From contig JAMWBK010000002.1 of assembly GCA_029953675.1 (NCBI GenBank), positions 1,798,001-1,862,000 of the forward strand: a stretch of 64,000 nucleotides of DNA, written 5' to 3'. A program made the translations under genes and the position numbers. This document shows positions 751 through 58,000 of this stretch, piece after piece; the stretch's first letter is position 1, and each line of letters opens with the position of its first letter. Under the pieces are notes generated by a model, which saw nothing but the letters and a program-made list of their open reading frames with translations, was not told the DNA's origin and made no database searches. This stretch comes from Rhodosorus marinus CCMP1338. Lineage: Eukaryota > Plantae > Rhodophyta.

Positions 751-3700
751 CTCTCTTCAAGGACAGTGCGACAATCCGTACACTGTGTTGTTCGATTAGA
801 AACGCTGCAGGACAAAAAAGTGAATAAAATCGAAGAGACAAGCCACTCTTAGACCAAAAAAATCAATACACAGTCACGTTTCATTTCACATTCCCATTGA
901 CTCTGTCCAAAATCTGACCGGTTCCCAACGGATGTACTTCAAAATAAAACAATCCAGAACGGGTCAATTCATGACCAATTGGTGCGTTTCTCACTTTCTT
1001 CTAAGCTCGGCCTTGCCGCAGCTCAGGCACGACGAGTACGAGCCGAGCATGATGCCAAAAATAAATATTCGAAAAGCTAATCTCAGGTGTCCTCAGCTAT
1101 CCTTTGAAAACCTTTCTCAACGACTACCTGCTCAAGCTTAAATCCTTTTCTGTCTTAGCATCATCCACCCATCTTCAACCCGCCCTTACCCATTCCCTCT
1201 CCATAAAAAGGGCATCCACGCTAAAGCAACCCCATTCTTGCGAAGATCCAACGGCTTGAGATCCTAGCAAGAAAACAGTGGCCAACTTGAGTGCGTCATT
1301 GTCCAGGTGCTTCGCTTTTCCACAATTTTTGTCATATTTCCAAAACTTTTCCCAAGCCAAAAATCCCGCTAGTAGCCTTCTACAATGCAAAATTATGTTC
1401 CCTGACTACTACGAACTTGGATGCCTAGCTATTCTGGTGCTATAATTTAGATATATCTAGACTCTCAACAAAACTTATTATTTCACATTTACAATATATT
1501 GCTCAGATTTAAAGCGCTGAAGTTGCAAATCGAGATTCATCGTGGTCTTATTTGCCGGTGAAATGGAAAAGGGTAGAATTCCACCCAACTCGAACGGTTG
1601 GGAAACTTTTGAGGGGGGGTGCGATGTCCTTGAACTTAATATTTATTTTTGAAAACGCAATACCTCGAATTTCAAAAAGGGTGGGGGTTGAAACGAAGCC
1701 GACACACCCCTGTTTCCCCCCTGAATCCATGTTCTGAAAAAAAAGCGAACCATTGGAGAACCATAATCTCAATGGCGGTCACGTATCGAAGATTCAATAC
1801 GATGATAGTAATATCGATGTGACTTTGGAGAAGGACCTAGGCACTGCGGATGGGAATTCTGGACAGCTCCAATGTGTGCACCATGGCCGGATCTGGCTCC
1901 GCCTACTAGCAGAGAGCTGCTTAGAGGCTGTCGACCATGAAGAAGCTGGGAAAGGTTATTAGCTCTGTGCTTTCGGAAAGCCTCAAGTGTCAGGTTGGGG
2001 TGATGAGTGCTTGTATGATGGCCTGTGCCTGCCGGGTTTAGACTTACTCAACCGAGTTGGAACAAGACATTTTATCATGCGAGCAAATCTATGACAACTT
2101 TTAAGTCCACAAACACTCCAGCGATGAGGAGGTGGTTCAGACGTCAAGCACCAAAAGTTGATGTGCTATGGAAAGCACTCCTTGCGTAATTCTCAACAGC
2201 ACATGGAAGCTTTTTCCAAAAATGTTCTTGAAAGTGGACAACAGACAAGCAGGATTTCTTATATCCCCCATGCGTATCCATGATAAAGCCACATACTTCC
2301 ACCAGAACACCATTCAGGGTAAGATCTAGTAGTAATACTTCCGGTTTTCATAGCTCCGCTGTGCTCCTCCTCCAACAAAGACGCTGCCCATCCAGAGAAC
2401 CAAAACACGAACGGAGCGAAGAACAGAAACAACGCATGAAAAAAAGCAACTGTTTCCCAATATCCCCTACAAATTCCCATTAGAACCCGCCGCGCATATT
2501 CAACAGCGGAGGACACATTTCAATGGGGACTAGGGCCTGGGCTGGGAGGCCTTCCCACATATTCAGACGTTTCCGACATCTTTATCCACTGTATTCCTGG
2601 AGTTGCGAGCCTCCGGGTCCGTATGATCTCATAGCTCTCTCGGGGTGGCCAGCTCCAGAGCTCACACTCCTCAACCTACTACCTTTGTAGATACCTGAGT
2701 GAAAAACTCCAGACCGTGCGTCATCCAAAATTGTCCTTCAAAAACCAAAAAAAGTAAATAATGACTGAAGCTCCATCAACATGAACTCATATAGACTGAT
2801 ATATCTACATTGAAAATCTATCAATACTGCGGTATAGATTGATATCACTTTATTTATTATAAATAAATTGCTCATCGTTGCTTTTATTGGAAAGAAAACC
2901 CAGCGCCTCGTTGAAAAGCGTAAAAAGTGTTCTGTTTTTCAAGCTAGTTCGTGGGGGGGGGGAATTTGAGGTAGAGGACTGGGGTGAGTGGACTGAGGTG
3001 AGTGGACTGGGTTGAGGATAAGACGGGGACTGATGGATTCCATATCTATGAGAAGGTTGAAGTAGAGAGAAAGGTGAGAGGTGTTGCGGTAAGTTAGAAT
3101 GCTTGGAACTGGGTAGTTTTGGTTTAGATGGTGGTATGATTTGCGTTTGTAGGCATGAATTCTAGAATTACTGGTGGAGAGAGGGGTTTGGAAGGACGGG
3201 TCTGGAATCTTCGGGGAGGGGGCGACTTCGTTGCGAAGACGAAAAAGAAGGGGTTTGGTCTTCCCGGGGAAGGAGTTTACTATGATCCGATCACATATTC
3301 GAAGTTGTGGGATAGATCGACGAGGAGACTCTCCCTCGGGTTGACTAAGACCTTCCATTTAGCCACTCTCAGCAACTTTTTGGAGAGGACTGTGCCAACT
3401 GTATTCGACGTGGGATGTAAGACTATTCCTTTTCTGTAGCAAGTCGCTCTGTCTGTATGGATATGCGCTCTTGAAACTCCTCGGGAATCGGAGTTTTCTG
3501 AGAGTAGTCTCGAAATGCGGTCTTCTTTACTGCCATGTGGACCCTGACTTGAATTTCTGCTTTGGTCATCATAGGTCGATTCATCAGTGGTCCGTACGTC
3601 CTTGGATGGAGACCAAGACCAGGAAAGAGCATGTGGCTTCTCGACTGGAAATACGAGCCCGTGTTTCGAACAGGGCTATCCGTTCAGCTCTTGGACCTGG

Positions 3701-4373
3701 CCAGTGCTGACGGTCTGAGTAAGGGCTACCTCAAGGTACTATGGATGCAAACTTGTAGTATCTGACTAGAATCCTGAAGCGAAAAATATCCCCAAGCCAA
3801 GCTCTTTCTGACCCGGAATACATCCTTTCTTCCCTGGTACAGTTTCGAGCCGGCTTCAACTCGCTAGGCCGACGTGAGCGAGGGTTCGAGTTGGATCGAA
3901 CTTATAAAATCCCCAAGATCGAGCTAGCTAGCGAGCTGCGAATCAAGGACAGCTCCGTTCTCAAGACTTTCGACACTCGCCTTTATGGCGAGGTGATTGC
4001 AAAGTAAGTTTATCGTAAATCATTCCCTGTAGTCCGCAAAACCGCGACCGCTTTGAACTGTTTCGACTCACGCCATGCTCATCCACAATCGTGGCACTAT
4101 TCGTCTCTTGCAGAAAAATTAGCCAGAGGATTCTCGATGAGAGCCACAGCCGATGGAGCATGAAGAGCACCTTTGGTTTCCAGCAGTCAATGTTATTCTT
4201 TGACTACTTCTTGGTAAGATGCCGCGTCGGTATGGGGTTGCGTCCGGACGGTACTAGCAGCAAAGTATTTGATTTTAAGTAAACAAGCAACACATTTTTG
4301 CCAAGCTATAATTGCATTAGAGTAAGTCTAAAAGTTAGTAAATCCCATTTTGGAGAGTAGTAGATATACGGAT

Positions 4374-7967: not shown

Positions 7968-10900
7968 CTATTCGCCGCGCAGGTCGCCCAGCTCATCCTT
8001 TGTGGGATGGTACCAATAACTCCGCACTTCCTTGTCGACCTGGGCTCGCTTCATACGATCACGATGAACCAAGGTCTTGAGCGGCGTCCCATCTGGCTCA
8101 GCTAGTCGGTGCGTGTCGAATAATCGGCGCTCCAAGACTCGGAGGGGTCCGACGTGGCGGTACGTGCCCTTTTGTTTTCACCTCGTTCGTGAGCAAGACG
8201 AATTCTCCCGTTTTGAGTGGGTCCCCCTTCACCTTCCAGTCATAGTAACGTGCCATTTGATTTTTGCGGCTTCTGTCCTCAGCGTGACAGCTTCGCGTTC
8301 TCGACCTAGTTGCTCTAGTTGTTTGACTCGCGCCTGAACAGAAACATCTTCGTCGACAGCATCGAACAATAACGGTGCCTGCGCCAGTCCGGGGATTCGC
8401 GGTTTCACCCCGTATAGGATTTCGTATGGTGACATGCGGTGATCCTACTGGTCCGCATTCGCAGCGCCATGTTCGCCTGGTGGATAAAGCGATCCCACCT
8501 CGTCACTGCTCCGTTCGTTAATTTCACGAGCACCTCCTGGAACGTCCGGTTCCACCGTTCCGCCGTCGAATTCGTCCGAGGGTGGTAGCTACTAGTAAAT
8601 CGTTGGGTAGTTGGCAGCAGTCGCAGATACTCCTCCACCACTTTCGACCGGAAATTAGCGCCTCGGTCGGTTAATATGTGAACTGGAGCTCCGTATGGGC
8701 ACACTATCTCCTCGTAAATGAACTTGGCGACGTTTGCCTCCGTCGCTTCCGGCATTGCCCTTACTACCGACCAACGCGTCAGGGACTCTACTGCTACAAG
8801 AATCCACTGATTTCCAGAGCCGTGCGCCTTCGGTAATCGTCCTATGAACTCGAGATTCCACCGGGTGAAGATGGCTTCCGTAGGTAAAGGATGCAGTGGT
8901 GCCTTCCGAGCCAACGGAGCCTGCACCTGATTCAATTGACAGCGAGGGCAATTTCGTACTGCTGTGTAAATGTCCGTCCTCAGCGTCCTCCACCAAAGTT
9001 TGCTTCGCAGGTGTTCGTAAAGCGCTCTTGCCGATAGGTGTCCCAACGCCTGGTGCGCATCTGCTAGCGCGTCGTTCCGATTTTCGGGCTCGACCCAAAT
9101 ACGTGCTTGGCCATCAATTTCTCGAGTGTATACTCCTGTAGCTGCGTCGAAGACGACGCCTTCCATTTTCCTTGCGCATCACGGATTGCTCCTCGGCGGT
9201 CAGACCTGTCTCCTTTCCTTCTCGCGCATACATCGTGAGTTGCGCCGTGGTCAACAGATTTACTCGAGACAAGCGTGACAACGCATCCGCCACGACGTTC
9301 GACCTGCCGGGCAAGTGCTTCATCTCGTAATCGAACCGAGATAGTTTTTCCAGGTAACGTGTCATCCGCCGCGAGGGCGGTACCTTCGTGTTCACATAGG
9401 TGAGCACGGCGTTGTCCGTGAACACCGTAGTCCGGGCTCCCTCCAGGAAGTGTCGCCATTTGAACAGACAATACACGATCGCATACATTTCCCGCTCCTG
9501 AACTGGGTACCTTCGCTCGGTGTCTGTAAATTTCCTACTTTCGAATGCCACCGGATTTCCCCCCTGCGTCAGCATCCCTCCCAATCCTATGTCTGAGACG
9601 TCAGTTGTTACCTCGAACTGAAGATGATCCAGGTCTGGGAGTCTCAAGATGGGCGCACTGCATATCAGCGCCTTAAGTTTCTCGAATGCCGTATGTACTT
9701 CGACCGTGATTTCGAAAGGCTCCCCATCCTTAAGCAACTCGGTTAGGGGAGCTGCTAGGGTTGAGAAGTTTCGTATAAATCGTCGAAAGTACGAAACTTT
9801 CGAGTCCCTTTAACTGACTGGGGTACCTCTAGCTTCCTTATCGCATCCACCTTAGTTTCGTCGATCGAGATGCGGCCGTTTTCGATCCGGAAGCCCAGAT
9901 ATGTCACCGCGTTAAGAAATAGCTCTGTCTCTACCGGGTGTAGGTATAGGTGATGCCGCCTCAGCTCCAGGAAGACCTGTCGGAGGTGTTCTTCGTGTTC
10001 TTCCTTATTACGGGAGTAGACGAGAATATCGTCGAGATACACAACTACAAACCGGCCGATGAAACGCCGTAGGATGTCCCACATCAATCGCGAGAAGAGG
10101 CCGGGTAAGGAAGTCAACCCAAACGGTGCCACACGCCATTGATAATGGCCGAATTCCGACACAAAGACCGCTTTTGGTTCATTTTCCTCCCGTATCCGCA
10201 GCTGCCAGTACCCACTCCGTAGATCGTGTTGGTCCAAGAGCTCGTCTATTTTTGGCAACGGATATTTAACCCGCTCGGTGACCTCGTTCGATGCGCGGTA
10301 GTCAACACACAAACGTAACTCGCCCGTTTTCTTTTTTACGAAAAGCACTGGGGCCCCCCATTGGCTGTTGGAAGGGGTTAAGAAGCCTTTCTCGATGAGG
10401 TCCTCCAGCTGATTCTTCAGCTCTCGCCGCTCCAATGGCGATAGTCGGTACGCGCACTTGAACACCGGCTTCGCGTTACCCGTTTCAATTGCTGCGTCCT
10501 GCTCCCGATGTGGCGGCAGTTTCGCGAACGTATCGACGAAGAGCTCATCGAACTCTCTCCGTAGCTCCTTTTCGGCTGCGCTCAACTCCTTCGTCGTTCC
10601 CGGAGTATCCATTTCGCGGATTTGGAGAACACCGATGTTCTCGTCACCGCCGACTGCTACTTCCTTTCGTCTGACCAGGAGCACCTCCGTGATGTTACTT
10701 GGCGTAGGCTGAAGTTTGAGGCACCGTAGTGATTCGTCCTGCCCTAGATCGTTGACCGCCGTCAGCGACCCGTCACCTGGGTGGATTATTACGCGGTTGC
10801 GCTTTAACCAGGGTAATCCCAGGATGACTTCGGGCCTCCCCGTTCCGCGACTCGGAACGTCTCCTGACTGCGCCACTTGGGTGTGCACTCCACCGTAATC

Positions 10901-11244
10901 CCTCGGACTATACCTACGCGGAATGCCTGTCCGAACGCTGCTCCCAGCGATTCGGTCTCCTTAGGCACCGTAATTTTCATCTTCGCGGCTACCGCGGTCG
11001 TCATGAGGTTCACCTGCGCTCCGGTGTCCACGATCGCGTTGACCTTGAGTCCGCCTACTTCTGCCGGGATCCGCAACAACGGTTGCCGTTGGTCGGGAAC
11101 GTCAGCTTCCTTCAAGATGGTCAATACCCGGGTTGCCGAGTCTTCACTCCCATATTTCGTGCCAGACGGTTCCTCCACGATGTTCACCCTACTTTTCTGG
11201 CCCTGACGTCGTTGCCGCGGCCCACGCACCGTTCCAACTGCCAT
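7968..11244 (-). pseudogene. pol: Retrotransposon pol (PR-RT-RH-IN), broken into several frames
   Basis: ORFs 10804-11244, 9755-10888, 9114-9737, 8405-9166 and 8229-8435, with a tail ending …LGDLRGE* at 7968. RT lacks the segment between LLDQ and DLRSGY. The first integrase catalytic D reads E (WNLEFIG). Confidence 0.9.
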
Positions 11245-12049
11245 TGGTACTGGTGCATCCAGGTGAGGTGGCGGTTGGGAACGATTTCGTGCTGGTCATG
11301 ACTTGTCCTGGCCGTCCGTTCGTTTTTACCCCGCGCCTTCATCACCTTCCGCCTCGACCCAGATGTCTCTTCGGATATTGACACCGCCAATTCGATCGCT
11401 CGCTGTAACGTTGTCGGGCGTAGTGCTCTTACGTACGTTTGTGGTACGTCCGTAAGCCCATTATGAAGAGTTGGGTCTGCATAAACTCGCTGAGGCATTC
11501 AGGGTCATACCTTCGGAGATGGTCCAGCGTGGATTCAAACTCCGTGGTATACCTCCGTGGCATACTCGTTGACTGTTGACCCTTGGCGTATCCTCGTCAG
11601 TTTGACCGCCAGTTCTACATCCTGGTTGTGGCTCGCGAATCGCGTTCGCAGGGCAACTTGCAACGCTGCCCACGTTGCCCGTTGTGTCACGGGGAGGGTG
11701 CGGTACCATTCGGTAACGGTTTTTGCAAGCCCTCGAACCGCGATGAAAACAAGTCACTGTCCTCCTCGAGGACATAAACGGCCTTCAGGTGCTCGAGCTC
11801 GCTTATGAATGTCTCGACGTCTGAAGTACCGTCGAAAGTCGGGGACTCAGATTTCTTTGCTAGTCGTCCCGATCGAGCTCCTTGCTGTTGTTGTAGCTGT
11901 TGCTGCTGCTGCTGTTGTTGTAGCTGTTGTTGTTGTAGCTGTTGATGTTCCTGCAACGCTTGCACAAGCTGCTCCGTCATCCGCTGTTGTTGCTCTAGTA
12001 GTTGAGCAACCGCGGGCATCCACGCACCCGGAGGAGGATTGGGTTCCAT
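11184..12049 (-). pseudogene. gag: Retrotransposon gag (frameshifted) with N-terminal polyglutamine tract
   Basis: MEPNPPP…QQQ…SPTFDGTSDVETFI, continuing in another frame as …EWYRTLPVTQRATWAALQVALRTRF… and …RPTTLQRAIELA. These are typical gag capsid segments. Confidence 0.75.
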
Positions 12050-13941: not shown

Positions 13942-14250
13942 TATTTTTTCTATATCTGAATGGCTGGATTGTTTTCTTTTCACTGATAAATTTTGTTGAA
14001 AGGGGACTATTGATGAGCAGCTTGTTTCTGTTTAGGCGATCGAGCCGGATTTCGGGGATGGGAGGCTTTGGCCTATGTATGTGTTTTGGATCACTAGGTT
14101 CGAGGCTTGTTGATCTTGAGTGAAGATCTACTTGGTAATGACTTGGTTTGGAGCGTAGATAAGATCTCTCGGAGAGTGGTCCACTTAGTTACACGTAAGG
14201 TGGATGTTTGCTTTGGGTACGTTCAGATTTTTTTTAATTGGCGCTTCACA

Positions 14251-15331
14251 ATGGAAGTGGAGGAACGGAAAACTGAGGAGAAATATGAGCTACCCTGGGT
14301 GGAAAAGTACAGGCCGATGAGGTTGAGCGAGGTTGTCGGGAATCAAGAGGTTGTGGAGAGGCTCAAGGTAAATGCCAAGCATGGCAATATGACGAATCTG
14401 CTGCTAACCGGACCTCCGGGTTGCGGTAAAACAACTGCGGTAATGTGCTTAGCGAGGGAAATGCTCGGAGAGGAGCTTCTTAGGGAGGCAGTACTGGAGC
14501 TGAACGCTTCTGATGAGCGAGGAATTGATGTTATTCGCAGCAGAGTGAAGATGTTCGCGCAGAAGAAGCTCTCTCTGCCCCCCGGCGCTCACAAGATTAT
14601 CATCCTAGACGAGGCCGATTCCATGACACCGTCCGCGCAACAGGCTCTAAGGAGGACAATGGAAATCTACTCATCGACAACACGGTTTGCTCTGGCTTGC
14701 AACCTTTCGAACAAGGTCATTGAGCCTATACAGAGCAGATGCGCGGTTGTTAGGTTTCAACGGCTGACAAACGAACAGGTCACGAAGAGGTTGCTTTTGG
14801 TCCTCGAGGCTGAGAGTGTCCCTTTTGAGCCTACGGGAATTGAGGCGCTTGTCTTCACTGCAGAGGGTGATATGAGAAACGCGCTCAACAATGCGCAATC
14901 CACCTTCCACGGATTTGGGAGGGTTACTGCGGACAACGTGTTCAAGGTAAATACAGACTGCCCCCAGAGCGCCGAGGCTCACATAAAACAGAAATTCTTC
15001 ATTTCCGCACAGTCTGAGCGCGTCATTGTTCCGTCAATAGGTCTGTGATCAACCCCATCCATTAGTTTTGAAACAGTTCATCGCCAAGTGTCTGGCCGTA
15101 GATCTTGACGGTGCGATCTCCGAGCTCCGATACTTGTGGAAGGAAGGCTATTCGGCAATTGATATTATTCAGACAGTATTTCGTATTGCGAAGTCGTATG
15201 ACATGTCCGAAGAGCAAAAGCTCGGTTATCTTCGCGAAGTAGGAAAGACTCACATGCGAATTGCCAATGGCGTAGATTCCATGATTCAGCTTTCAAGTCT
15301 GGCCGCGCGGTTATGTGAAGTCCAGCCTTGA
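14251..15331 (+). CDS. RFC2: Replication factor C subunit 2 (human RFC2 / yeast Rfc4 type), 1 intron
   Basis: [49 protein letters not shown] and IEPIQSRC. Intron 14947-15040 joins FK|VCDQPHP. Confidence 0.96.
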
Positions 15332-28817: not shown

Positions 28818-31052
28818 TTATCCGGTTAACTCTGGGTCCAGATCTTCCTTCGCCTGATTGAGTATATTCCAGATCGAGAGAATATCGTCCTCCGTCATGG
28901 TCATCTCTCGAGCGTCTGATCGATAGTGGACTTTGCATTCCACTTTCTTCCGGATGCAATCCAACGAGTCCACGTATTCTGATATTTCAGGAAATTCCAG
29001 CCCCGAGGTGAGGGTGTACGACTTATATCGCAATCCAGCCGTGGAGCCGTACTTGAAAAGGTCGTGGGCAAAGCGATAGGGGAAGATTTCCACGAGCTGC
29101 GCTCGAGGGGGCAAAAATATCGCGTTCACCAAGTTCGCCCCATGTATTCCAATGGCAATTGCTGCGTTCTCCACAGCTTTCACTTGGGCCTCAAAGGAAA
29201 GACCTTCAAACGTCACCACCCTCATGTCAAACCCCCATTGCTTGGACAATTCTGATAGCATTGACACGAGGCGTCCTTCTGACTCTGAATCAAACGAGCG
29301 ACCAGATCCCCTCTTTAAATATACGAGTTTTCGTTTCAATCGAAGGGGTTCGCTTGTGTCCGAATATCCAATCATGGCGAACACACTTCGACGAAACCCC
29401 AGCGCATCTCCCGGTAACCTCTCGGGGTCCTGGAGACACACACGACGGGAAGTGAAAAGCCAAGTTATGTTTCTGCGCCATGTTAGAACCTCAGGAATTG
29501 CTCTCACCTCATCCTCCGGGTACTTGGATAATCCCGGGACCTCAATGCTCGGAAGAAAGACGCGGTTTTTTAAGTACCCGAGCAGTATCGCCCCACGGAA
29601 ACAGGTCGTACCCCCGGAGGACATAGATCTATCATTACGAAGGTACTGTACGCGTTCAGTCCCTTCATAGCGGTCCAAACTGTCCAGTACCCGATCGGGC
29701 ACAGACCACGGGTTCACTACTGCCCTCAGCGCTTCCCTGTGCCAGCTTGATCTGGACAGCAGCTGATTCATGATGTGGTCAGACGCTAGGAGCAGTGCGT
29801 TCTGGATGGGTTCCACTCCGAAACCCTTGTTTTGGTAAGAGCAAGAACGGGGATTAGATTTTTCGACAATTCGAATGGCCGGTTCGAACTGAGATTTCGT
29901 AAATCAGAAAAGTTGATGTTTCCTCACCTCCGCATGGCGCATGAGAGTCCATAAAAAGAGAATTCTCGGAGAATACTGGGCGATATTCGAGTCAGACTTT
30001 GGAAAGGCTAGCAGTGCTGTCATATTTTCTACCCAGCGGATACCTCCAGATTCCTCCTGTGATACGTCCAAGCAGAAGATGTCGTTTGGTTTTTTTCACA
30101 CGTTCACGTACGAGGAGCCCGTACTGCGGCTTTCTCAAGCAGTGGAAGGGGTGGCCGAGACGACCTACCTGTTCTTTAAGCCACGAACGAGGCTGGGGCA
30201 CTGGATCCCCTGTTAGGCCACTTTCGCCAAACGTTTTCTTCTCGATTTCCAGACAATCGTTTTCTCCCATGGCAGTTTTTTCTCCTCTAAGCTGGAATGA
30301 ATCGCAGGAAATATCGCCTTCAATATAAACTATCTGTCCACGGTTGATACAGAGGGGCGAGTATTTACAGAACCGCTCATAGCGACCGGTTTTCATGCAG
30401 TATCGAGTCGCGTTGAAAGCGTCTTGCGCGAAGAAGGTAGTCCAGTCTAGTGATGTTTGCGAAACGCACCGAGACGAAGTTCGCGTTCAAGGTCGGACAA
30501 AAGTTATCTTTTCAGTAAGCGAGAATTAAGAGGAGATCATCCCCATGCTCGCTCCATGAGAAGATCGAACGAATCACCCTCTCTCGCACGCAGCGTTGAG
30601 ACAAAAGCCTACCTTTCTGGGCCATCGAATCCTGGTCATCTCCATTGCTAGTTGAAATGATCTCATCCACACCGTCTAAACCATCTTGTATGACATCATC
30701 AATGCTTGTTCCTGTTGTTGTCCTAAATCTATTGCCAATATCCTGCCGGAACACTCTCAGGACAGCCATTGTCATAGAGCACCGTAAGCATTGGGCTTCG
30801 CAGCTTCTGGCAAGCAGATCCTCATTTTGAGGAGAAAAACATCGACGTAGGCAGTTTACTTACAAAACTTACGGAGACGTATAGCACGTGCGCAAGAAAT
30901 CCTAGCATGATAAACGCTATCGCCGTTGTCAGCATGAGATCTCTCCGGGGACGACTACTGCGCCTCAAACTTAGAGGTATTGAAATCGCTCGGGTCACGA
31001 CCTCCCGTTCAGGCGTCTCCATATTGCCCCCTCGTTCAGGGAAGCGACTCAT
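28818..31052 (-). CDS. Glycosyltransferase family 61 (DUF563) type II membrane protein, several introns
   Basis: LSFEAQVKAVENAAIAIGIHGANLVNAIFLPPRAQLVEIFPY is the GT61 signature. N-terminal TM at 30822-31109. The 5' exons are only approximately placed. Confidence 0.82.
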
Positions 31053-32006
31053 TCGCAGATCCGGAGGGACCCGCCTCGCTAGAATCACCCAAAATCTGTG
31101 CGTATTCACATAGATTCAACATTCAGCTCCTGCACTTGCTAGTCTTCAGAGCCTCTATCTCACTTGAACAAGGGAATAGATTACTAACAAGCTCACGCAT
31201 TCCTAGGCCCTAACCTTCCAAGCGCTTCCGTTCAATTCGCTGCTAGCCGATGCGGACAGTGCACGATCCATCCACGTCTAGCTATTAATTCGCCAATGGA
31301 TTGACTGCTATTCTGAAATTTCAATGGTCTCTGCAAGGCAGGCCCTGTTTGGTTGTAGCTCACCACATTTGAGCGGCAAAACGCTTAGCTCTAACTGGTC
31401 CAAGATGGGTCTGGAAGAACCGCCCGAGCAAAACGAAGACCTAGAAAGAGCAGTATGGAACTGAATATGGACCTCGTCTTCGCAAATTCTCGATCTCGAG
31501 GTTTAATGAGAAGGCTGCACGTGACCGCGCCGATTTACTAGAAGACACTGCAGGAGCTTGCTTCATACAGTTCCGAGAGACCTTTTTCGCGAGATTCTCA
31601 AAGATTTTAGCACAGTCCAGTCCACGCTCTCACCTTCTCCACCAGCAACAAGCCCCAAACGCCTAGTTCCCGCAGTCCCACTTTCTGTCCCGTGGGACAG
31701 TACTATAGCTTATGAACCTGGACAGATCTACCCGCACCAAATCCACCACTACTGACAAAAAAACGATTAAGAAATTACTATAATTCTATGTTTTAGTATG
31801 TTTTGAGTTGGGAATGGTTTTTGGTTTTTGTTGGATGGATTGGAAGGGGGTTTTAAGGAGGGAGAGGGAGCGGGTGGCAAGTGCTTGGGTGGTTGGCAAT
31901 GGTGAAGAGGGCGTTTGCAAAAGTTCTATTTTGGATTTTAAATTGATGAACAGAGGTATTGATACAAAAAGAGACTGATGAAAGTGTTCGAAGGTGGTTG
32001 TTCGGG

Positions 32007-33658
32007 ATGAGTAAAACGGGAGAAGTTGGCAATGGAGTGAGGGATGTGGAGGGAGGAGGTGGTGGTGGTTTTCAGATTCTGAAGGTGTTGAAGAATAATG
32101 CAGTGCTGATTTGTTGTGTGGTTCTGCTGGTTGTTTACTCAGTGAATTATGAGGCGTTGCTGCATACGGATGAGATTGCCAATCATGAGGCTATTCTAGC
32201 GGAAATTGGAAGTTCGCATGAACTGGACAGGTTAGAGACGGGTGGAGTTTCGCTGCAGGACCCAGATGCCGGTGGTGCTAGTTCAGAGGACAAAGTTACC
32301 TTAACTTATGGAACTCCGGGTACTCCAAAATATCCACTCGATGACAGAAAGAAGAACACCGAGCTTGTCCCGGATGCTTTGAAAGGAACAATCGACTTTC
32401 GAGAAGACAATGACGGCATCCCGCCACCGGCGCCGCCGCCGGCTCCTTCCAACGATGTTCAGGACGGGGAGATTCCCTCGGATGATACCCCTGAACAAGC
32501 CAAGGCACCCGTGAACTACGATCACGGCACGCCGTCCCACGAAGTTGTTCGAAAGCCTGCTCCGGCAGACTTTGACATGGGCTCCATTCTCGCCTCGCCT
32601 CTCGCTTCGAGGCTGATAGTTAGTGAGAGTTTGAAGGCGATGTATTGCCCTCTTCCAAAGGTTGCGTGCTCGAACTGGAAGTCCTTGTTCAGAAAACTTG
32701 AAGGTTTCCAAAACTATAAGAACCTTGCGCTGGCTCACGACAAGGCGAACAGCGGTTTGAAGTACTTGAAGGACTACACGGAGGAAGAGGTAAACAAAGA
32801 AAATCTCAGACCCGTGATCTCAGTTCTATGTGGCACTAGCCTTTAGCTTTCTGGCTAACATTTCGTATCGACTTTGCAGGCTTTGAAAATGGTACAGGAT
32901 CCTGAGTGGTTGAAATTTGTTGTTGTTCGTGATCCAGCAACCCGTCTGCTCTCAGCTTATCTGGATAAGTTCTACCGACGTGAGCTCGATTCACCGGAAT
33001 TTATCAAGTTTTTCGACCAGCTCCTCGGTTTCCAGTACAGAAAGAACGCAGTGGAGCTCTTCATGCCATCGTTTGAAGAATTCATTATGTACATTGGCAG
33101 GCAAAGTGACTTCTCCATGAATGAGCACTGGGCACCACAAGTATATCTCTGCCAGATGGACAAGTTTCCCTATGATTTCGTAGGAAGGTGAGAAATGAAA
33201 TTAGAAATGTAAAGACTTGCAGCAACGCGTGATCTACCTCGAGCTAACGCAGGTCCCATTTTCTGGAACGTGGTAGGTTTGAAAATTATGACTCGGATGC
33301 GTTTGCGGTTTTGGATGCTCTTGGTCATCCCGAAGAGGAATTCCCGAGCCAGTCGAAACTAGGATTCCAATCAATGGGAACGAGCGAGAAAATGGATGAA
33401 CATTTTACCAACGAGATCAGGACTCAAGTCGAGGATAAGTTTGAGCGCGACTACAGGGTATTGAATTATCCGACAATTACCCGTGACACAACCCCGCTAC
33501 CTCCAGATGAAGAAGAGAAGGAGGCCCTTCCTGCCTTTTCATCCTCGGTTGAAGACGAGCAGGGCGTATCCCCCAACGATGCTGAGGAGATCCATGATCT
33601 TGCAGATCCTGCAGAGCCCAAACTGGATGATTCAAACACTAACGGAGAAACTAACTAG
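32007..33658 (+). CDS. Golgi carbohydrate sulfotransferase (Sulfotransfer_2 / CHST8-14-like), 2 introns
   Basis: N-terminal TM and a Pro-rich stem. 5'-PSB YCPLPKVACSNWK, 3'-PB FVVVRDPATRLLSAYLDKF, and NEHWAPQ…YDFVGRFE. Confidence 0.92.
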
Positions 33659-45474: not shown

Positions 45475-46569
45475 TCACTGTGGATTGCGCGAGTATCCAC
45501 GAAACGTCTCCGCTTCAAGAGACTTAAGCCTCGACTCGCAGTCGTCCATTCTCGAAGCCAATCGACTCACAGTTTCCTGGAGCGCTTCCATTGTGGCAAT
45601 CTGGGCATCTCTCTGAGCGTCAACTGCTCTCCATAGTCTATTCGAGCGCGACAGAAAAAAGGGAAGATTTAGTTGGCGAAACCAAGAGTCCCAGGATCGG
45701 TCGGTTGCGATCGTTCCTGACAATTCAAACTCATTCACGGTAAGCTGCTCGCGACGGGAGATCTCTGCTAGTCGATTCGCGCTCGAACCCCAGCCCTGAT
45801 CAACGCTCTGACGTGCCCCCTTCGGAAAGTTCTCCACGGACGGCGTCTTCCCTGTGGACTTATTTTCTCTGCTCCCGACGGTTTTCTTAGAGTCCTCTCC
45901 GGATGGCAACTTTGAGGACTGCACCAGGCGGTCGGGAGAGTCGAACCTAGCATTGCTGCTGCTTCTTAGCGATCTCCTCTCCACGAGCTTCAAGCGATCA
46001 AAGTCGCCACGTCTGAAATCTGTGTGACCGAACTCCCACAAGTCCGGACGCAGCTTCTGAAAGCCGTATTGGTTGAGCTGCCTTATGAAGCTGGAAAAAT
46101 TATTGTGGCGAAAGTATCTTGGGATCACGTCCCTCGCAAAAGTATCTGGATTCCAGATTGTGAAACTCTTCCCATTGTCCGTCCACCTACAGTGCTGCTG
46201 ATTCTCCTCGGCCTGAAGAAGGGAGAAGAGCTTCTGTACAAACGGGGCGGGGGTTTTCAGAGTCGGCAACGATGCTGCAGTCGTTGCGGTCTCCTCTGTC
46301 GGCGCAGTTTTGCTGATATCCTCCTCCACAGGGTAGTACTCTTTCGCAGGCGACAATGGAAAGGGTACCGCGTTAGGCCGGAACTGGGGTGAGTATCCCA
46401 ATCTTAGGGCTGGTTCCTTACCTTCAGATTTGGATTCGCGATCCAGTAGTACCGTACTGATGAAGCTCCTTGCCTTATCTGTCCTCGGACGCTTTCGTGT
46501 GACCTCCTTCCCTTCTCGCGAAAATTGTCCTCCTCCCCGCGTAGTTTCATCCGCGGAGAATTCTGCCAT
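45475..46569 (-). CDS. Heat shock transcription factor
   Basis: HSF DNA-binding domain PFVQKLFSLL…WTDNGKSFTIWNPDTFARDVIPRYFRHNNFSSFIRQLNQYGFQK…WEF. Coiled-coil C-terminus. Confidence 0.93.
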   Translation of the reverse strand: MAEFSADETTRGGGQFSREGKEVTRKRPRTDKARSFISTVLLDRESKSEGKEPALRLGYSPQFRPNAVPFPLSPAKEYYPVEEDISKTAPTEETATTAASLPTLKTPAPFVQKLFSLLQAEENQQHCRWTDNGKSFTIWNPDTFARDVIPRYFRHNNFSSFIRQLNQYGFQKLRPDLWEFGHTDFRRGDFDRLKLVERRSLRSSSNARFDSPDRLVQSSKLPSGEDSKKTVGSRENKSTGKTPSVENFPKGARQSVDQGWGSSANRLAEISRREQLTVNEFELSGTIATDRSWDSWFRQLNLPFFLSRSNRLWRAVDAQRDAQIATMEALQETVSRLASRMDDCESRLKSLEAETFRGYSRNPQ

Positions 46570-47609
46570 TAGCGGTGGTCCGTAAGAAGAAAACCGTTCA
46601 GGTCCCTGACTTGAACCCGTCCGAGCACACACAAACGATATCATCCACGTCTAGCACCCCGCTTATAGCTTTGCCTCGTCCTCGTATACCCTCAACTTCC
46701 CCTAGACACTCTCGTCTAGAGAAATCCAATTTGCATTTTACAATCTTAAAGCTCTACTCAGCTCCTCGGCGTCGATCAAAAAAGTGTATAAGGCCGCGGG
46801 CCTTCATAGCGTAGTCCCCAGCTCTTAGTCGTACGATCGCAACTCATCGTCTTCTCCTGGACTTTTCCGGAGTGCGTTGTTAGCAAAGCCCTGCCTAACA
46901 AGCCCAAAAGAACTGGAAGGATATTGAGTCGAAAGCAGAGCGGGCAAAAAAAAATGGGCTTACACTTCACAATGCAGCGCTGAGGAAAATTTATTTGCAT
47001 ACGGCTTCAGAAGACATCCACGCTCCTCGCGAGAAAGAGCAAAAACCGTTGCTCTACCCTTGTTGCACACACAACTCCATATCAACTTTGCCAGGTCTTA
47101 ACTTTCCCTCACCTTCGTTTCACCATCCATATTGCTATTTATACTTGCTCATTCGGTACTCCATAATCCATCCATACTCATTAACAAAAAATATCGCCAC
47201 ACCATCCAAATCTGCACACCAACATCGCATCGCAGACGACTGATCTAAAAGATTCCTCTGCGCACCTAAACCAACAAAAAAAAAAATCCTATCGCCTAAC
47301 CATGCCCTATCAAACATACCAGATCACCACAAGAGCGGATTCAGTAATTTTTTCTTTTTTGGTAATCTCTTTTGATGATCGCAAAATTCAAACCAGAATT
47401 CCCATTTATTTACCTCGTTTTTTTGCTCTCCTAGAAACTTCTGAAAAAGGTTCGGGGTCGTTTCTTAAAAAAGCAGTGAAAGCATTATCAGTCAATATAA
47501 CTCGCCGGGAAGAACAAGGACGACGTGCTCTCCCCATACAGAGACTAGCACACGATAGCACACTGCGGATGGGTTTACAAACACACACGACGCGCTAAAC
47601 TAGAAATAT

Positions 47610-53195: not shown

Positions 53196-54010
53196 TCTTT
53201 TAAGGACACGTGTCCCTAAATAGTCGCAGAAAGCTGCAAGTTACTGACCTCCTAAGCATATTTTGAAAGTCCGAGTAGCCATAGCGTAGGGAACAGGGCA
53301 AGGAGTAGAAGGAGGAGAGAGGGGGGTGGCCAACTATCTCTGTGAGGAGCGTGATGAAAGTATGAACTGAACCTCAAAGGAACTTGAGCCGAGGGATTAA
53401 GTCGTTCGGATTATCCAAGGGTTTCTGTGCCTACCGATGCCGCCGGGGTCGATGGCCTCTTCTTCGCTCCTCGCATGTTTAGGATACCTTTTTGGTTCCG
53501 GTGCCTTGTGGATGAAGGAAGTGGAAGGAAAACGAACGGCACAAAGAACTGCTCTTGAGAATAAGGGCGGTTGTACTCCGCGATAGGGCTAAACCGAGAA
53601 GACTCTGAAAACGCGACCAACCATGGAGTCGATCCCCAAAGTACTCGCGCTACCAGAGGACACAAGAAAACTCCCTTCGGAATGCGCTTGTACTAGACTC
53701 TAAGTCCTTGCCACCTTAGCCACCTTAGCCACCTTCTTCAACCAATGTCATGGCAGCTTGTGTTCAATAGTCTATGCACCTAAAAATTCATCGGACGGTC
53801 TATGACAACACTAATGCATTGAACTAGTTGTGCTTTTACTTCTTGCATTACAAGCCTCCAATCGGGAAGGCTGACTCCCAGCAGAGAACACCATGGTCTT
53901 GAGATTCAAGATCACGATAGTACGTTGGCCATGGGTTTGAATAGGCAAACTGCATGGAGAAGGTATCAATAGGGGATGGATTTCAAAGATAGGAAAAGCC
54001 GTTGATCGGG

Positions 54011-56431
54011 ATGAAACTGAATCGATTGATAAGTAGATTTATCAGTTGTCGTAGAATCGGGACATTGCAGCGGAATGATCCTGATTCTGTGATTGTGCTC
54101 CCCACGCACAAGCGGGTTCCGGATGAGTTGGGAGTTCTGGCAGGGACGGTGTCTCTGGCGTTGAATCGACATGGAGCAAAGTCCGTTGGTTTTTTTCGCG
54201 CTGCGGATGGTGGAGGATTTGATTCGGTTGCAATCATCAAAGACAAGTACGAGGGCGTCAAGTCTCGAAACGGAATATCTGGTCAATCTTTGATAAAGGG
54301 GTTGTCAGGCTCCACAGATCATCTCGTGGAGAGCATCGCAGATGAGTACGAGCGCTTTCGGAAGGAGAACGAAGGTTTGGATTTCGTCGTTCTGGAAGGA
54401 TTCTGGTTGCCTGGCCACTCCGATGGCTTCATGCACGAGGTCAACTCGAAACTTGCGACCAGGCTTGGGTGCAACGCCCTAGCAAACGTCGATTGTCAGG
54501 GTGATTCCAAGGCTTCTGTGGCCAGCCATGCTGAAGAACTCGTTCGTGAGCTTCGTCGTCGACTTGTACGCGTCACTGGTGTTATTCTTGTTGGTGGTTC
54601 AGGGCGCGGGTTGCGAAAATTCATGGAATCCAGACCGTTTCCGTTTGCCGGACTGATTCCAAGGGATAAGTTGCTGTCCTCACCCACATTCAGCGACCTT
54701 CGGGATCAGCTCGACGCAGAAGTATTGTGTGGGACAGACAGGAGCCTTGAGGGAACCGTAAACTCGAAGAAGGTTTCGATTGCAACAGGTTTCGATGTTC
54801 GAGATGTCACTTTCGAGCGGTTGGAGTTGCACAAAACCAGCCTCATTCGATTCATCCATAAGAAAGGTGGACTCGTATCGATTGAGGAGCTAGAGGCGCG
54901 TTTTGGGCTTGACGAAGACGTTCTAAAGGCCCTCGACGTCGACAAAGATGGAATGATAAGAGAAGAAGATATCGTTGATTACAGCAGTGCCACTCTCATC
55001 GTGACTTCCTTTGATCGAACCGACATCGTTCTCAGCGTGTTCCTGTCTGAGCTGTCGGTCCAGGACTCTGGGAGTTACTCCGGGGTAATCGTCTGCAGCT
55101 ACCAGGGAGGTTCAGGGCTGAAGGAGATTGTCAACAACGCAGCAGAAGCTTATAAGCTAAGGCTTGGCTCGGAGCACCGCCCCCTTCCTCCAGTACTGGG
55201 GGTGAAAACTGCGCTTCATGGAACTGTCAAGAACCTGCGGAGAGTGACTCCACAGCTCTCCAAGCAATCAGAAAGAAAAATCGATCGAACGATCGAAAAC
55301 TTTCGGAAGTTTGTGGATCCGGATGTGATTCTGCAGAGCATTTCTGAACCGAAGAGCCAGGTGGTTACCCCAGCGATGTTCCAGCATCAATTCCTGCAAA
55401 GGGCTGCAAAGAAGCAGCGAAGGATCGTTCTGCCAGAGGGTACCGAACCAAGAATATTGCTCGCGGCACAGGAGTTGCTTAGAAAACAAGTTGCAGATAT
55501 AGTCTTGCTTGGTAACGAGCAAGAAATACTCTCTGTGACAGGGGCGAACGACATAGAACTCAACGGTGCTGAGATCATCGACCCGGACAGTTCTTCCCTA
55601 ACCCAAAAGTACGTCGAGGAGTTTGTGAGGCTTAGAAAGAAGAAAGGAGCAAATGTGGACATGGCAAAGGATGCATTGCAAGATATGAACTACTTTGGGA
55701 CGATGATGGTTCAATGCGGGGACGCGGACGGAATGGTATCGGGTTCCGTAAACACAACCGCCGCCACAGTTCGGCCAGCTTTGCAGCTGATCAAGACCAA
55801 GGAGAACATCTCGATCGTCTCTTCTGTCTTCTTCATGTGCCTACCGGACAAAGTCCTCGTCTATGGCGATTGTGCCATCAACCCCAAGCCGACGTCGTCT
55901 GAGCTCGCTCAGATCGCCGTCACATCTGCGCATACTGGAGCTCAGTTTGGAATAACCCCGACTGTTGCCGTGTTATCTTTCTCATCTGGAGACCGAGCCA
56001 AGAGTCCCGAGGTCCGGCTCGTATCCGAGGCTGTCAAGCTCGCTCGTAAGCTCGATCCCAAGCTGAAGATCTACGGGCCTATTCAATATGATGCCGCGGT
56101 AAGTCCCAGCCTGCCCACAGGTTTCTCGCCAAAGAAGGCACCCGGCTTGATGCCTATGCTAACCCTTTCTTCTCTAACTCCTGGTCCACAGGTTGATGAG
56201 AACATAGCAAAAGGAAAAGGGCTGGGAATGGAAGGTCCTGCAAATATTCTGATCTTCCCCGATCTCAACACCGGCAACATTGGGTACAAAGCGGTCCAGC
56301 AGAGTACCGGTGCCTTGGCCGTTGGACCTGTGCTCCAAGGGCTGAGGAAACCCATCAACGATCTTAGCAGAGGAGCTCGAGTTGCTGATATCGTGAACAC
56401 CGTTGCCATCACAGCTTGCATGGTGGAATAG
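54011..56431 (+). CDS. pta: Long-form phosphate acetyltransferase (N-terminal P-loop-like and DRTGG-like regulatory domains plus PTA catalytic domain), probably organelle-targeted, 1 intron
   Basis: RIVLPEGTEPRIL, YFGTMMV…ADGMVSG, YGDCAINPKP, GPIQYDAA, FPDLNTGNIGYKAVQ and QGLRKPINDLSRG. Arg-rich N-terminal presequence. Intron at 56099-56191. Confidence 0.95.
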   Translation: MKLNRLISRFISCRRIGTLQRNDPDSVIVLPTHKRVPDELGVLAGTVSLALNRHGAKSVGFFRAADGGGFDSVAIIKDKYEGVKSRNGISGQSLIKGLSGSTDHLVESIADEYERFRKENEGLDFVVLEGFWLPGHSDGFMHEVNSKLATRLGCNALANVDCQGDSKASVASHAEELVRELRRRLVRVTGVILVGGSGRGLRKFMESRPFPFAGLIPRDKLLSSPTFSDLRDQLDAEVLCGTDRSLEGTVNSKKVSIATGFDVRDVTFERLELHKTSLIRFIHKKGGLVSIEELEARFGLDEDVLKALDVDKDGMIREEDIVDYSSATLIVTSFDRTDIVLSVFLSELSVQDSGSYSGVIVCSYQGGSGLKEIVNNAAEAYKLRLGSEHRPLPPVLGVKTALHGTVKNLRRVTPQLSKQSERKIDRTIENFRKFVDPDVILQSISEPKSQVVTPAMFQHQFLQRAAKKQRRIVLPEGTEPRILLAAQELLRKQVADIVLLGNEQEILSVTGANDIELNGAEIIDPDSSSLTQKYVEEFVRLRKKKGANVDMAKDALQDMNYFGTMMVQCGDADGMVSGSVNTTAATVRPALQLIKTKENISIVSSVFFMCLPDKVLVYGDCAINPKPTSSELAQIAVTSAHTGAQFGITPTVAVLSFSSGDRAKSPEVRLVSEAVKLARKLDPKLKIYGPIQYDAAVSPSLPTGFSPKKAPGLMPMLTLSSLTPGPQVDENIAKGKGLGMEGPANILIFPDLNTGNIGYKAVQQSTGALAVGPVLQGLRKPINDLSRGARVADIVNTVAITACMVE

Positions 56432-56704: not shown

Positions 56705-57632
56705 CTAGCGCAAGCGATCATCAAACTCTGAGTTTTTCGCGATGACTCCTGCGCTTTTAAGAGCAGTGAACGCGCTTAGCAAGTGTTCCTCCTCCATTGC
56801 GATTGATAAAGGATCTGCGTATCGCACAGCTTGAAGCCACTGTGAAGCATCTCCCCTTGCCAGGCCGTAAGTCTCCACTATGAACGAAACGGACTTCTCG
56901 CCTTCGTTTAACTTGAAGCTCTTTGCACATTGTAAAGCCTTCTGGAGTGCCCCTTTCAGTTCTTCTTGAGCAGGATTGTCTTTTTTGCAGGCAAGAACAA
57001 AGCATGGCCAAGGTGTTGGTACCTCTCCGATAGTTCGCACTTCTCCAGAGTCATGGAACGGTTTGGTCATGAACTTCTCCCACATAAAAACGTCGCAAAC
57101 GCCAGAGTTGACTGCATCGCGAAGCTGAGAGAAACCTCCGATAACTACGAACTCTAGTCCTTCGCTCCAACCTCGGTCCTTGGCCATTACCGCTGCCATA
57201 ACATGAGATCCAGACCTGGTATGAACGGGGAAAATGCAGTTAACAGAGTTTAGACCTTTTCTCAAAACCGATGAGCTGGAGAAGGTGTGATCCATACCCC
57301 ATTCTTGATACACCGAATCGCTTTCCTCTTAGCTGTTCTAATGATTCAAACTCAGTTTTTCCACCGACGTGAACTCCCCAGATGAGCTCGGAGGCGACGT
57401 ACGTGCCAATGATCTTGATATCAGAGCATTGTTGATCCTCATAGGCCTTGGCGACTACGCACTCAGTCAGTGCGACGATGCCGTCGTAGGTACCTTCAGC
57501 TAGGCCCTTGAGCATTGCACCGGATCCCTCTCGAACCTCAGAAAACTGAACGGCGACACCGTCCATCCTCCATGGGACATTGAAATGCTCTGGGACACCC
57601 CCGATCCTCACTTTTCTGTCCTTCCCATTCAT
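56705..57632 (-). CDS. Ca3427-like type 2 periplasmic-binding-fold protein (NMT1/THI5-like superfamily), 1 intron
   Basis: RIGGVPEHFNVPW, GSGAML, FGVSRMG|SGSHVM, FMWEKFMTKP and IGEVPTPWPCFV. Intron at 57216-57297. Confidence 0.82.
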
Positions 57633-58000
57633 GGTTCTTTGTTCCAATTCCTACTGTAAACTGTCCTTCTTCCTCAGTGCAGGTTCGGAGATCCGATCGT
57701 CTTCAACATGGGGTTACAGACAGAGTTGGTTTAGCCCCTTCGTCAAGATTTTGAGTTTTCCGGGCGGGTGGACTATCCACCGTGCGTGCAGAAGAGAGAA
57801 AAACAATCGTCACGAAAGTACGTTTTACTTGTAGGATTGACTTGTACAATCCAAAAACCGCTACAGATCTTCTACAACCATGAGTTGTTTTCCAAGCCAC
57901 GTCATGGCAGTGAGTGTCTAAGACGAGGGTAAAACTTAGGCGGCAACCTCTTTCACAATTCCTGAAGTTTTCAAAGTACAATTGATACCTAGGTCTTAGT

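Follow-up and report, generated by a model that had tools for sequence, protein, structure and literature searches.

A long (class IIa) phosphotransacetylase (Pta) with an EF-hand pair of ~55 residues nested in its DRTGG domain, where a loop joins helix alpha1 to strand beta2, is encoded in a 64,000-nucleotide stretch of the red alga Rhodosorus marinus CCMP1338 (contig JAMWBK010000002.1, positions 1,798,001 to 1,862,000; hereafter the window). The nested module is exonic, is conserved across several red-algal lineages and in two old Pta paralogues, and has evolved under purifying selection. The enzyme is probably Ca2+-responsive through the second hand (EF2), as the sharing of the module by several red algae suggests. 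Metabolic enzymes and carriers under EF-hand control are known, and long Ptas are well known; what is new is their combination, which is apparently undescribed. Ptas interconvert acetyl-CoA and acetyl-phosphate; none is, to our knowledge, known to sense Ca2+.

Phosphotransacetylase gene and its product

The window is eukaryotic nuclear DNA of R. marinus, a species whose nuclear genome was published in 2023 (PMC10250338). The Pta gene and the parts of its product were placed as follows (positions are those of the window; aa, amino acid residues).

54011..56431 (+), Pta gene; product of 775 aa, spliced translation equal to KAJ8907761.1
54011..56098 (+), exon 1
56099..56191 (+), intron, GT-AG, 93 nt
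56192..56431 (+), exon 2, stop codon included
54011..54085 (+), N-terminal extension MKLNRLISRFISCRRIGTLQRNDPD, read from the sequence; basic, first acidic residue D23; putative organelle-targeting presequence
54086..54655 (+), probable divergent BioD/AAA_26-like domain; aa 72-253 correspond to positions 51-249 of the PRK05632 profile
54656..54814 (+), DRTGG domain, first part (strands and helix alpha1, aa 216-268); aligns to bacterial Ptas; AlphaFold2 elements E23-26, E41-44 and H49-54
54833..54976 (+), EF-hand pair nested in DRTGG (aa 275-322), in the order helix, pseudo-loop, helix, linker, helix, canonical-type loop, helix; from AlphaFold2, insert-profile matches in the Protein Data Bank (PDB) and Foldseek
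54854..54889 (+), EF1 pseudo-loop IHKKGGLVSIEE (aa 282-293); register from the AlphaFold2 beta-bridge at aa 288-290
54935..54970 (+), EF2 loop DVDKDGMIREED (aa 309-320), with D1, D3, D5, G6, I8, R9 and D12
54992..55330 (+), DRTGG domain, second part (aa 328-440); opens with the strand TLIVTS and the DRTD motif; AlphaFold2 elements E114-119 and H123-134
55379..56416 (+), PTA_PTB catalytic domain (aa 457-771; Pfam PF01515), split by the intron

The open frame extended over 54002..56431 (+), with the start ATG at 54011, and the Pta consensus IQYDAAVDENIAKGK was restored in the spliced translation once the intron had been removed. The product (P0004) was identical to KAJ8907761.1 and to UniRef A0AAV8UYS3, both from R. 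marinus.

A first-pass annotation, made from the letters of the window, had called the gene a long Pta, and profile searches agreed. The equivalog model for long Ptas (NCBIfam PRK05632) scored 609 bits against a cut-off of 418 and matched in two pieces (aa 72-253; then aa 324-772 on profile positions 263-701), leaving ~56 residues unmatched between them, at the very place where the first-pass annotation had put an insert. PF01515 scored 392 bits against a cut-off of 24 (E=3e-117) over profile positions 2-319 of 319, and TIGR00651 scored 358.5 bits against a cut-off of 311.2. The catalytic domain matched solved Ptas over its full length (7t88, 1.5e-94; 1qzt, 2e-65), and a reading of the protein as a pseudo-enzyme was rejected on that ground. 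The architecture (a probable BioD/AAA_26-like domain, then DRTGG and PTA_PTB domains, the last full-length) corresponds to that of the bacterial class IIa Ptas of E. coli and Salmonella.

PTA_PTB was the sole Pfam domain found in the full-length window Pta. Pfam AAA_26 gave no match in this protein and fell just under its threshold in the Pta of Pyropia (25.9 bits against 27); PRK05632 applied to the N-terminal fragment of the window Pta gave E=5e-20. Pfam DRTGG likewise gave no match in the window Pta itself, the region being covered by PRK05632 and modelled by AlphaFold2 as an alpha/beta domain with the DRxD strand. Bacterial long Ptas begin at the first strand, without the 25-residue N-terminal extension; the basic composition of this extension suggests an organellar location for the Rhodosorus enzyme.

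Position and exonic status of the insert

Long Ptas were aligned by MAFFT (bacterial and green-alga-like sequences). The VSIATG and TLIVTSFDR strands were separated by 67 residues in Rhodosorus and by 13 in bacteria, a surplus of ~54. The first-pass annotation had seen an insert between VSIATG and LIVTSFDRTD, which is present, and had put it at about 45 residues, which was too few. The insert lies between helix alpha1 and strand beta2 of the DRTGG domain. Its placement inside that domain, also claimed at first pass, was borne out in the relatives described below, in which Pfam DRTGG exceeded its gathering score (31-39 bits against 25.2). In the paralogue P0010, profile positions 1-41 precede the insert; positions ~37-105 follow directly after the EF-hand loop in the relatives, so that the insert splits the DRTGG match.

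The insert had also been taken to be exonic. This was confirmed in a protein from another strain, the Rhodosorus transcript protein P0003 of MMETSP0011 (774 aa, 89-92% identical), in which the downstream intron is spliced and the insert is kept. The window and the second-strain contig L006 were compared codon by codon, with small counts, for the ratio of non-synonymous to synonymous substitution (dN/dS). It stood at 0.29 in the insert and 0.16 in the EF2 hand; the catalytic domain gave 0.125 and the gene as a whole 0.21. Such a pattern marks a coding sequence kept under purifying selection. Contig L006 itself (JGI 3300017118, MMETSP-derived) keeps the 93-nt Pta intron and extends into the convergent neighbour gene, and is therefore read as unspliced or read-through RNA, or as genomic DNA in a transcriptome assembly; the spliced P0003 is its sister isoform.

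These data bear on the reading of the insert as an artefact, whether a motif arisen by chance in a linker, an intron missed in annotation or an assembly error. The sub-threshold scores of the Pfam EF-hand models (given below) are in favour of that reading, as is the intron retained in L006, which is hence not mature mRNA. Against it stand the insert retained in the spliced P0003, the coding-type substitutions and the presence of the same insert position in eight proteins from independent assemblies. Moreover, six-frame translation of the 64-kb window yielded a single match to the relaxed pattern DxDxDGx[ILV]xxx[DE]h, where 0.02 matches were expected by chance (shuffles). An artefact is accordingly held to be very improbable. 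An intron or alternative-splicing artefact in particular was rejected on the spliced transcript and the coding-type substitutions, and a chance motif was rejected on the conservation of the loop across relatives.

Loop sequences and predicted fold

The EF2 loop satisfies the 12-residue ligand layout: positions 1, 3, 5 and 12 carry oxygen-ligand residues, position 6 is Gly and position 8 is hydrophobic. In the EF1 loop, Gly6, Val8 and Glu12 are kept and positions 1, 3 and 5 are without acidic ligands, for which reason this pseudo-loop is probably non-metal-binding. A degenerate partner had been noticed at first pass as HKKGGLVSIEEL; the partner is present, and its register in the AlphaFold2 model is one residue off that reading (IHKKGGLVSIEE). 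Taken from the Rhodosorus sequence alone, the case for an EF-hand is suggestive but weak.

The insert profile (A2) was searched against the PDB and recovered 508 sequences at E<=1, with EF-hand proteins in all of the top 60. These included Entamoeba CaBP1 (EhCaBP1, 1.4e-13) and calmodulins (~1e-8); these whole-sequence E-values sum several repeats, and the best single stretch had a conditional E of ~2e-7.

Residues 215-440 were modelled by AlphaFold2 together with eight relatives (predicted local distance difference test (pLDDT) 78, predicted template modelling score (pTM) 0.68). The elements of the insert were H275-284, E288-290, H291-298, H302-308, E315-317 and H318-322; the DRTGG strand came next, at 328-333. 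This predicted topology corresponds to an EF-hand pair with a beta-bridge joining the loops (insert pLDDT 76-88, about 80 over aa 275-322, from an alignment of 8-9 sequences), and the same topology was obtained when the insert was modelled alone (pLDDT 76). In Foldseek searches with the insert model, nearly all of the top 50 matches were EF-hand lobes, among them those of centrin, calmodulin, RASEF, RasGRP2, CRACR2a and the ATP-Mg/Pi carrier (SCaMC, 4zcu). Insert profile, AlphaFold2 and Foldseek support the initial description of the insert as an EF-hand pair with one canonical-type and one degenerate loop.

The N-terminal 452 aa gave no match in the PDB by phmmer. No structure of a full-length class II Pta was found by sequence, only the fragments 7t85 and 7t88 and the DRTGG protein 2ioj.

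Relatives and conservation of the loop

A full HMMER scan, queried with the N-terminal 452 aa of the Rhodosorus Pta, covered 1.84 billion representative proteins. Of 21 matches in total, six carried an EF-hand loop at the homologous position. With P0003, the loop is thus found at this site in seven distinct proteins besides the window Pta. The loops of the six are listed by protein.

P0006, DYDRDGYVRSCD; genomic contig, run SRR22824290
P0007, DLDGDGVLDEED; transcriptome sample JGI 3300016809
P0008, DMDGDGVVTVRE; Porphyridium purpureum
P0009, DIDKDGMISLRE; a second transcriptome sample
P0010, DEDHDGKLSFED; Porphyridium purpureum
P0011, DLDHDGIITVRD; transcriptome sample JGI 3300016809

Porphyridium purpureum is the source of P0008 and P0010, its two Pta paralogues; P0007 and P0011 share a single transcriptome sample, and P0009 belongs to a different one (the JGI samples behind these relatives being 3300016809 and 3300016707). 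Identities of 22-44% were recorded for these relatives, and the N-terminal region of P0006 is 44% identical to that of the Rhodosorus Pta. P0006 is a syntenic orthologue, since on its contig, as in the window, the convergent gene downstream is PBP2_Ca3427-like (NMT1-type periplasmic-binding fold). This neighbour lies directly 3' of the Pta gene at 56705..57647 (-) in the window, at 2606..3781 (-) on L001, the SRR22824290 contig, and at 2768..3218 (-) on L006, from the second Rhodosorus strain.

Across the eight sequences, the only invariant columns of the insert were D1, D3, D5 and G6 of the loop; the strain pair aside, the inserts were only 22-39% identical. Loop position 8 was I, V or L and position 12 was D or E in all eight. 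The distance from D1 of the loop to the [DS]RxD motif was exactly 26 residues in 8/8 sequences, and the insert segment upstream of the loop varied in length by ~50 residues. The strict PROSITE pattern PS00018 was passed by P0007, P0008, P0010 and P0011 and was failed by the window Pta, P0003 and P0006 (each at Arg9) and by P0009 (at position 13). Pfam EF-hand models were sub-threshold in the relatives as well, the best score being that of P0010 (EF-hand_1, 20.9 bits against 25.4).

In the bacterial, green-alga-like and other eukaryote-like long Ptas of the match set the insert was absent, a 4-residue turn standing where the red-algal enzymes have an EF-hand insert of 54-100 residues. EF-bearing proteins grouped together in a rough neighbour-joining tree (without support values), in which two paralogue groups were seen, both with the loop, which would fit one ancient insertion event. 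A pair of EF-hand Pta paralogues occurs in each of two organisms (P0008 and P0010 in Porphyridium purpureum; P0011 and P0007 in JGI 3300016809). The paralogue types measure ~810-870 aa and ~920 aa, the latter with an N-terminal extension of 120-150 residues. They may serve different compartments, as the two Chlamydomonas PAT enzymes do.

Other protein searches added no taxa: the N-terminal query found the MMETSP relative only, profile A1 gave two matches, and most of what profile A3 found were insert-free long Ptas of bacteria. The small number of A1 matches is probably due to Pyropia low-complexity sequence, which would have swamped the word index.

The Rhodosorus loop is the least canonical of the set. 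Arg9 is confined, among the eight sequences, to the loops of Rhodosorus and SRR22824290, both of which fail PS00018, and their insert is the shortest (64 residues against 84-113 in the others). Such features would be expected of a decaying relic, that is, a hand that was functional in the red-algal ancestor, and is perhaps still so in Porphyridium, and that has lost metal binding here. Decay is less easily reconciled with a loop that is identical between two Rhodosorus strains, with the dN/dS of EF2, which was counted as no higher than that of the catalytic domain, and with the syntenic relative P0006, whose insert is 39% identical and retains D1, D3, D5, G6 and D12. The relic explanation is considered unlikely.

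Weighing of a possible Ca2+ response

Several observations count against a Ca2+-responsive EF2. The first-pass annotation had the coordinates and the sequence of this loop right and called it canonical, which it strictly is not: PS00018 fails at Arg9, and position 12 is Asp, not Glu. Asp at position 12 of an EF-hand loop reduces the affinity and selectivity for Ca2+. Only the second of the two hands is plausibly metal-binding. Pfam EF-hand models stayed below their gathering scores on the isolated window insert (E=0.002-0.03), the best being EF-hand_5 (18.2 bits against 25.9, E=0.0017). On the structural side, the AlphaFold2 alignments were shallow (8-9 sequences), and the Foldseek matches of the insert had weak E-values (0.1-0.5) and TM-scores of 0.45-0.6. 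No meaningful Foldseek match was obtained with the two-domain model (DRTGG and insert), a failure attributed to nested domains, which defeat alignment. Lastly, Pyropia vietnamensis keeps the insert and has the loop replaced by Gly/Ala low-complexity sequence, which shows that the enzyme can dispense with the site in at least one lineage.

The Pyropia protein (P0023, GAB0489019.1) has the Gly/Ala run LSSGGNGGGGGGGGAAAAAAVTAGNGLTVADVE at about aa 395-440, where the EF-hand loop is expected. It appears that the metal site was lost specifically in this lineage, whose genome is very rich in G+C.

Part of this evidence would also fit an EF-hand fold that is no Ca2+ sensor, serving either to hold a permanent structural metal (Ca2+ or Mg2+) or as a metal-independent surface for docking or oligomerisation. 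Arg9 and Asp12 of the Rhodosorus-lineage loop, the lack of ligand residues in EF1 and the insert kept without its loop in Pyropia are all in keeping with such a role, as is the involvement of the N-terminal region of long Ptas in oligomerisation, to the extent that this is summarised in PMC12724200. Set against it is the invariance of D1, D3, D5 and G6, with an acidic position 12, among eight inserts of such low identity, a pattern expected from selection for metal ligation. The invariant ligand residues disfavour the metal-free docking role; a permanent metal and a sensor fit them equally. A non-sensor module of either kind is judged rather unlikely, while being the most serious of the alternatives. 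The reading preferred here is still that of a Ca2+-responsive enzyme.

Proposed mode of action

Under the preferred reading, the EF2 loop is predicted to bind Ca2+. With Arg9 and Asp12, and going by general EF-hand chemistry, binding in the Rhodosorus lineage would probably be weaker, or mixed between Ca2+ and Mg2+. Ca2+ at EF2 would alter the helix packing of the EF pair, and this change would be transmitted to the DRTGG domain via the rigid C-terminal junction, in which the exiting helix of EF2 is modelled to lead, over a fixed-length spacer, directly to the strand bearing the DRxD motif. The perturbed DRTGG domain could then shift the activity, the effector sensitivity or the quaternary state of the enzyme. 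Flux from acetyl-CoA to acetyl-phosphate in a red-algal compartment, probably an organelle, would in this way answer to Ca2+.

Long Ptas are tuned by metabolites via their N-terminal region, and the role of DRTGG in this is poorly understood. As far as earlier work is summarised in PMC12724200, long Ptas depend on their N-terminal region for oligomerisation and full activity as well as for allostery by pyruvate and NADH, and a point mutation in the DRTGG domain of Salmonella Pta changes activation by pyruvate.

A wider proposal is advanced only tentatively and with less confidence than a Ca2+ response as such. It is that a direct Ca2+ switch at the acetyl-CoA/acetyl-phosphate node was acquired before the main mesophilic red-algal lineages and the two Pta paralogues diverged. 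Organellar Ca2+ transients (e.g., light-to-dark or oxic-to-anoxic) might bind EF2, reset the DRTGG domain via the 26-residue link, and toggle fermentative acetate and ATP production or acetate assimilation.

If this wider proposal holds, acetyl-phosphate metabolism would have its first example of a Ca2+-gated enzyme, which would also be a natural instance of an EF-hand nested within an allosteric domain. Even should no Ca2+ binding be found, the insert would stand as a clear case of one domain inserted within another and conserved there. A conserved EF-hand rigidly coupled to the DRTGG signature strand offers a concrete handle on signalling from DRTGG to the catalytic domain. It also bears on the route by which Ca2+ signals act on the carbon and energy metabolism of red algae, in which anaerobic and acetate metabolism are little studied.

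Comparison with described proteins

Close counterparts are the two Ptas of Porphyridium purpureum (KAA8494553.1, 869 aa; KAA8493511.1, 917 aa), both annotated simply as 'phosphate acetyltransferase'. In each, an EF-hand is nested at the site known from Rhodosorus and is likewise spaced 26 residues from DRxD. They differ from the Rhodosorus enzyme in their longer inserts (84-93 residues) and longer N-terminal extensions and are 35-40% identical to it overall; their loops (DMDGDGVVTVRE and DEDHDGKLSFED) pass strict PS00018, whereas the Rhodosorus loop fails.

An EF-hand module confers a Ca2+ response on the external NAD(P)H dehydrogenases NDB/NDE (as an internal insert), on mitochondrial glycerol-3-phosphate dehydrogenase, on Aralar/citrin and on the SCaMC carriers. 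The design principle, an EF-hand fused to or inserted in a metabolic protein, is the same in the Rhodosorus Pta. The host is unrelated, however, the module is nested in an allosteric domain and is neither terminal nor in a catalytic fold, and only one functional hand is predicted.

The DRTGG fold is shared, as a regulatory or dimerisation module, with the CBS-domain family II pyrophosphatases and with AF_1212 (PDB 2ioj), the only solved DRTGG relative found by sequence; these are without an EF-hand insert. Where regulation through DRTGG is known in these proteins, it is by nucleotides.

In the literature searched, no paper was found that links phosphotransacetylase (phosphate acetyltransferase), or DRTGG, to an EF-hand, and no Ca2+ effect was reported for any Pta. 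The Porphyridium genome paper mentions neither link, of Pta or of DRTGG to an EF-hand. Public records examined were named only 'phosphate acetyltransferase' or 'hypothetical protein'. With such generic names, and with Pfam EF-hand matches all sub-threshold, routine annotation leaves the architecture unflagged. The first-pass annotation had allowed that EF-hand Ptas might prove to be already widespread and described; they are widespread within red algae and apparently undescribed.

Metagenome pattern matches and other features of the window

Metagenome contigs were scanned with a degenerate DNA pattern of 41 bits (EF-hand loop plus the 26-residue spacing to RxD), which returned at least 120 loci. 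No new EF-hand Pta was found by tblastn among the pattern matches listed, and the one eukaryote-looking match (L082) was rejected, not being a Pta. Among the matches (L007-L126) are highly conserved bacterial proteins from no fewer than three unrelated families, for example LDGDVDGMVHLSDLDWQK...YNRGD, MDANRNGLVERAEA...FDYNRDDVV and MDCDENGIMGSRDYENG...KKSYDII.

On long open reading frames elsewhere in the window, the following Pfam gene fragments were recorded.

14107..15048 (+), clamp-loader/RFC-like AAA ATPase
28818..29816 (-), GT61 glycosyltransferase
31959..32846 (+), sulfotransferase
45475..46644 (-), HSF-type DNA-binding protein

Open reading frames with Integrase_H2C2, rve and RVT_1 domains occupy 8405..10888 (-), which looks like the pol region of a retroelement of the long-terminal-repeat type. 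Around these frames (~8000..12000), G+C is raised (0.54-0.55) and AT skew is strongly negative.

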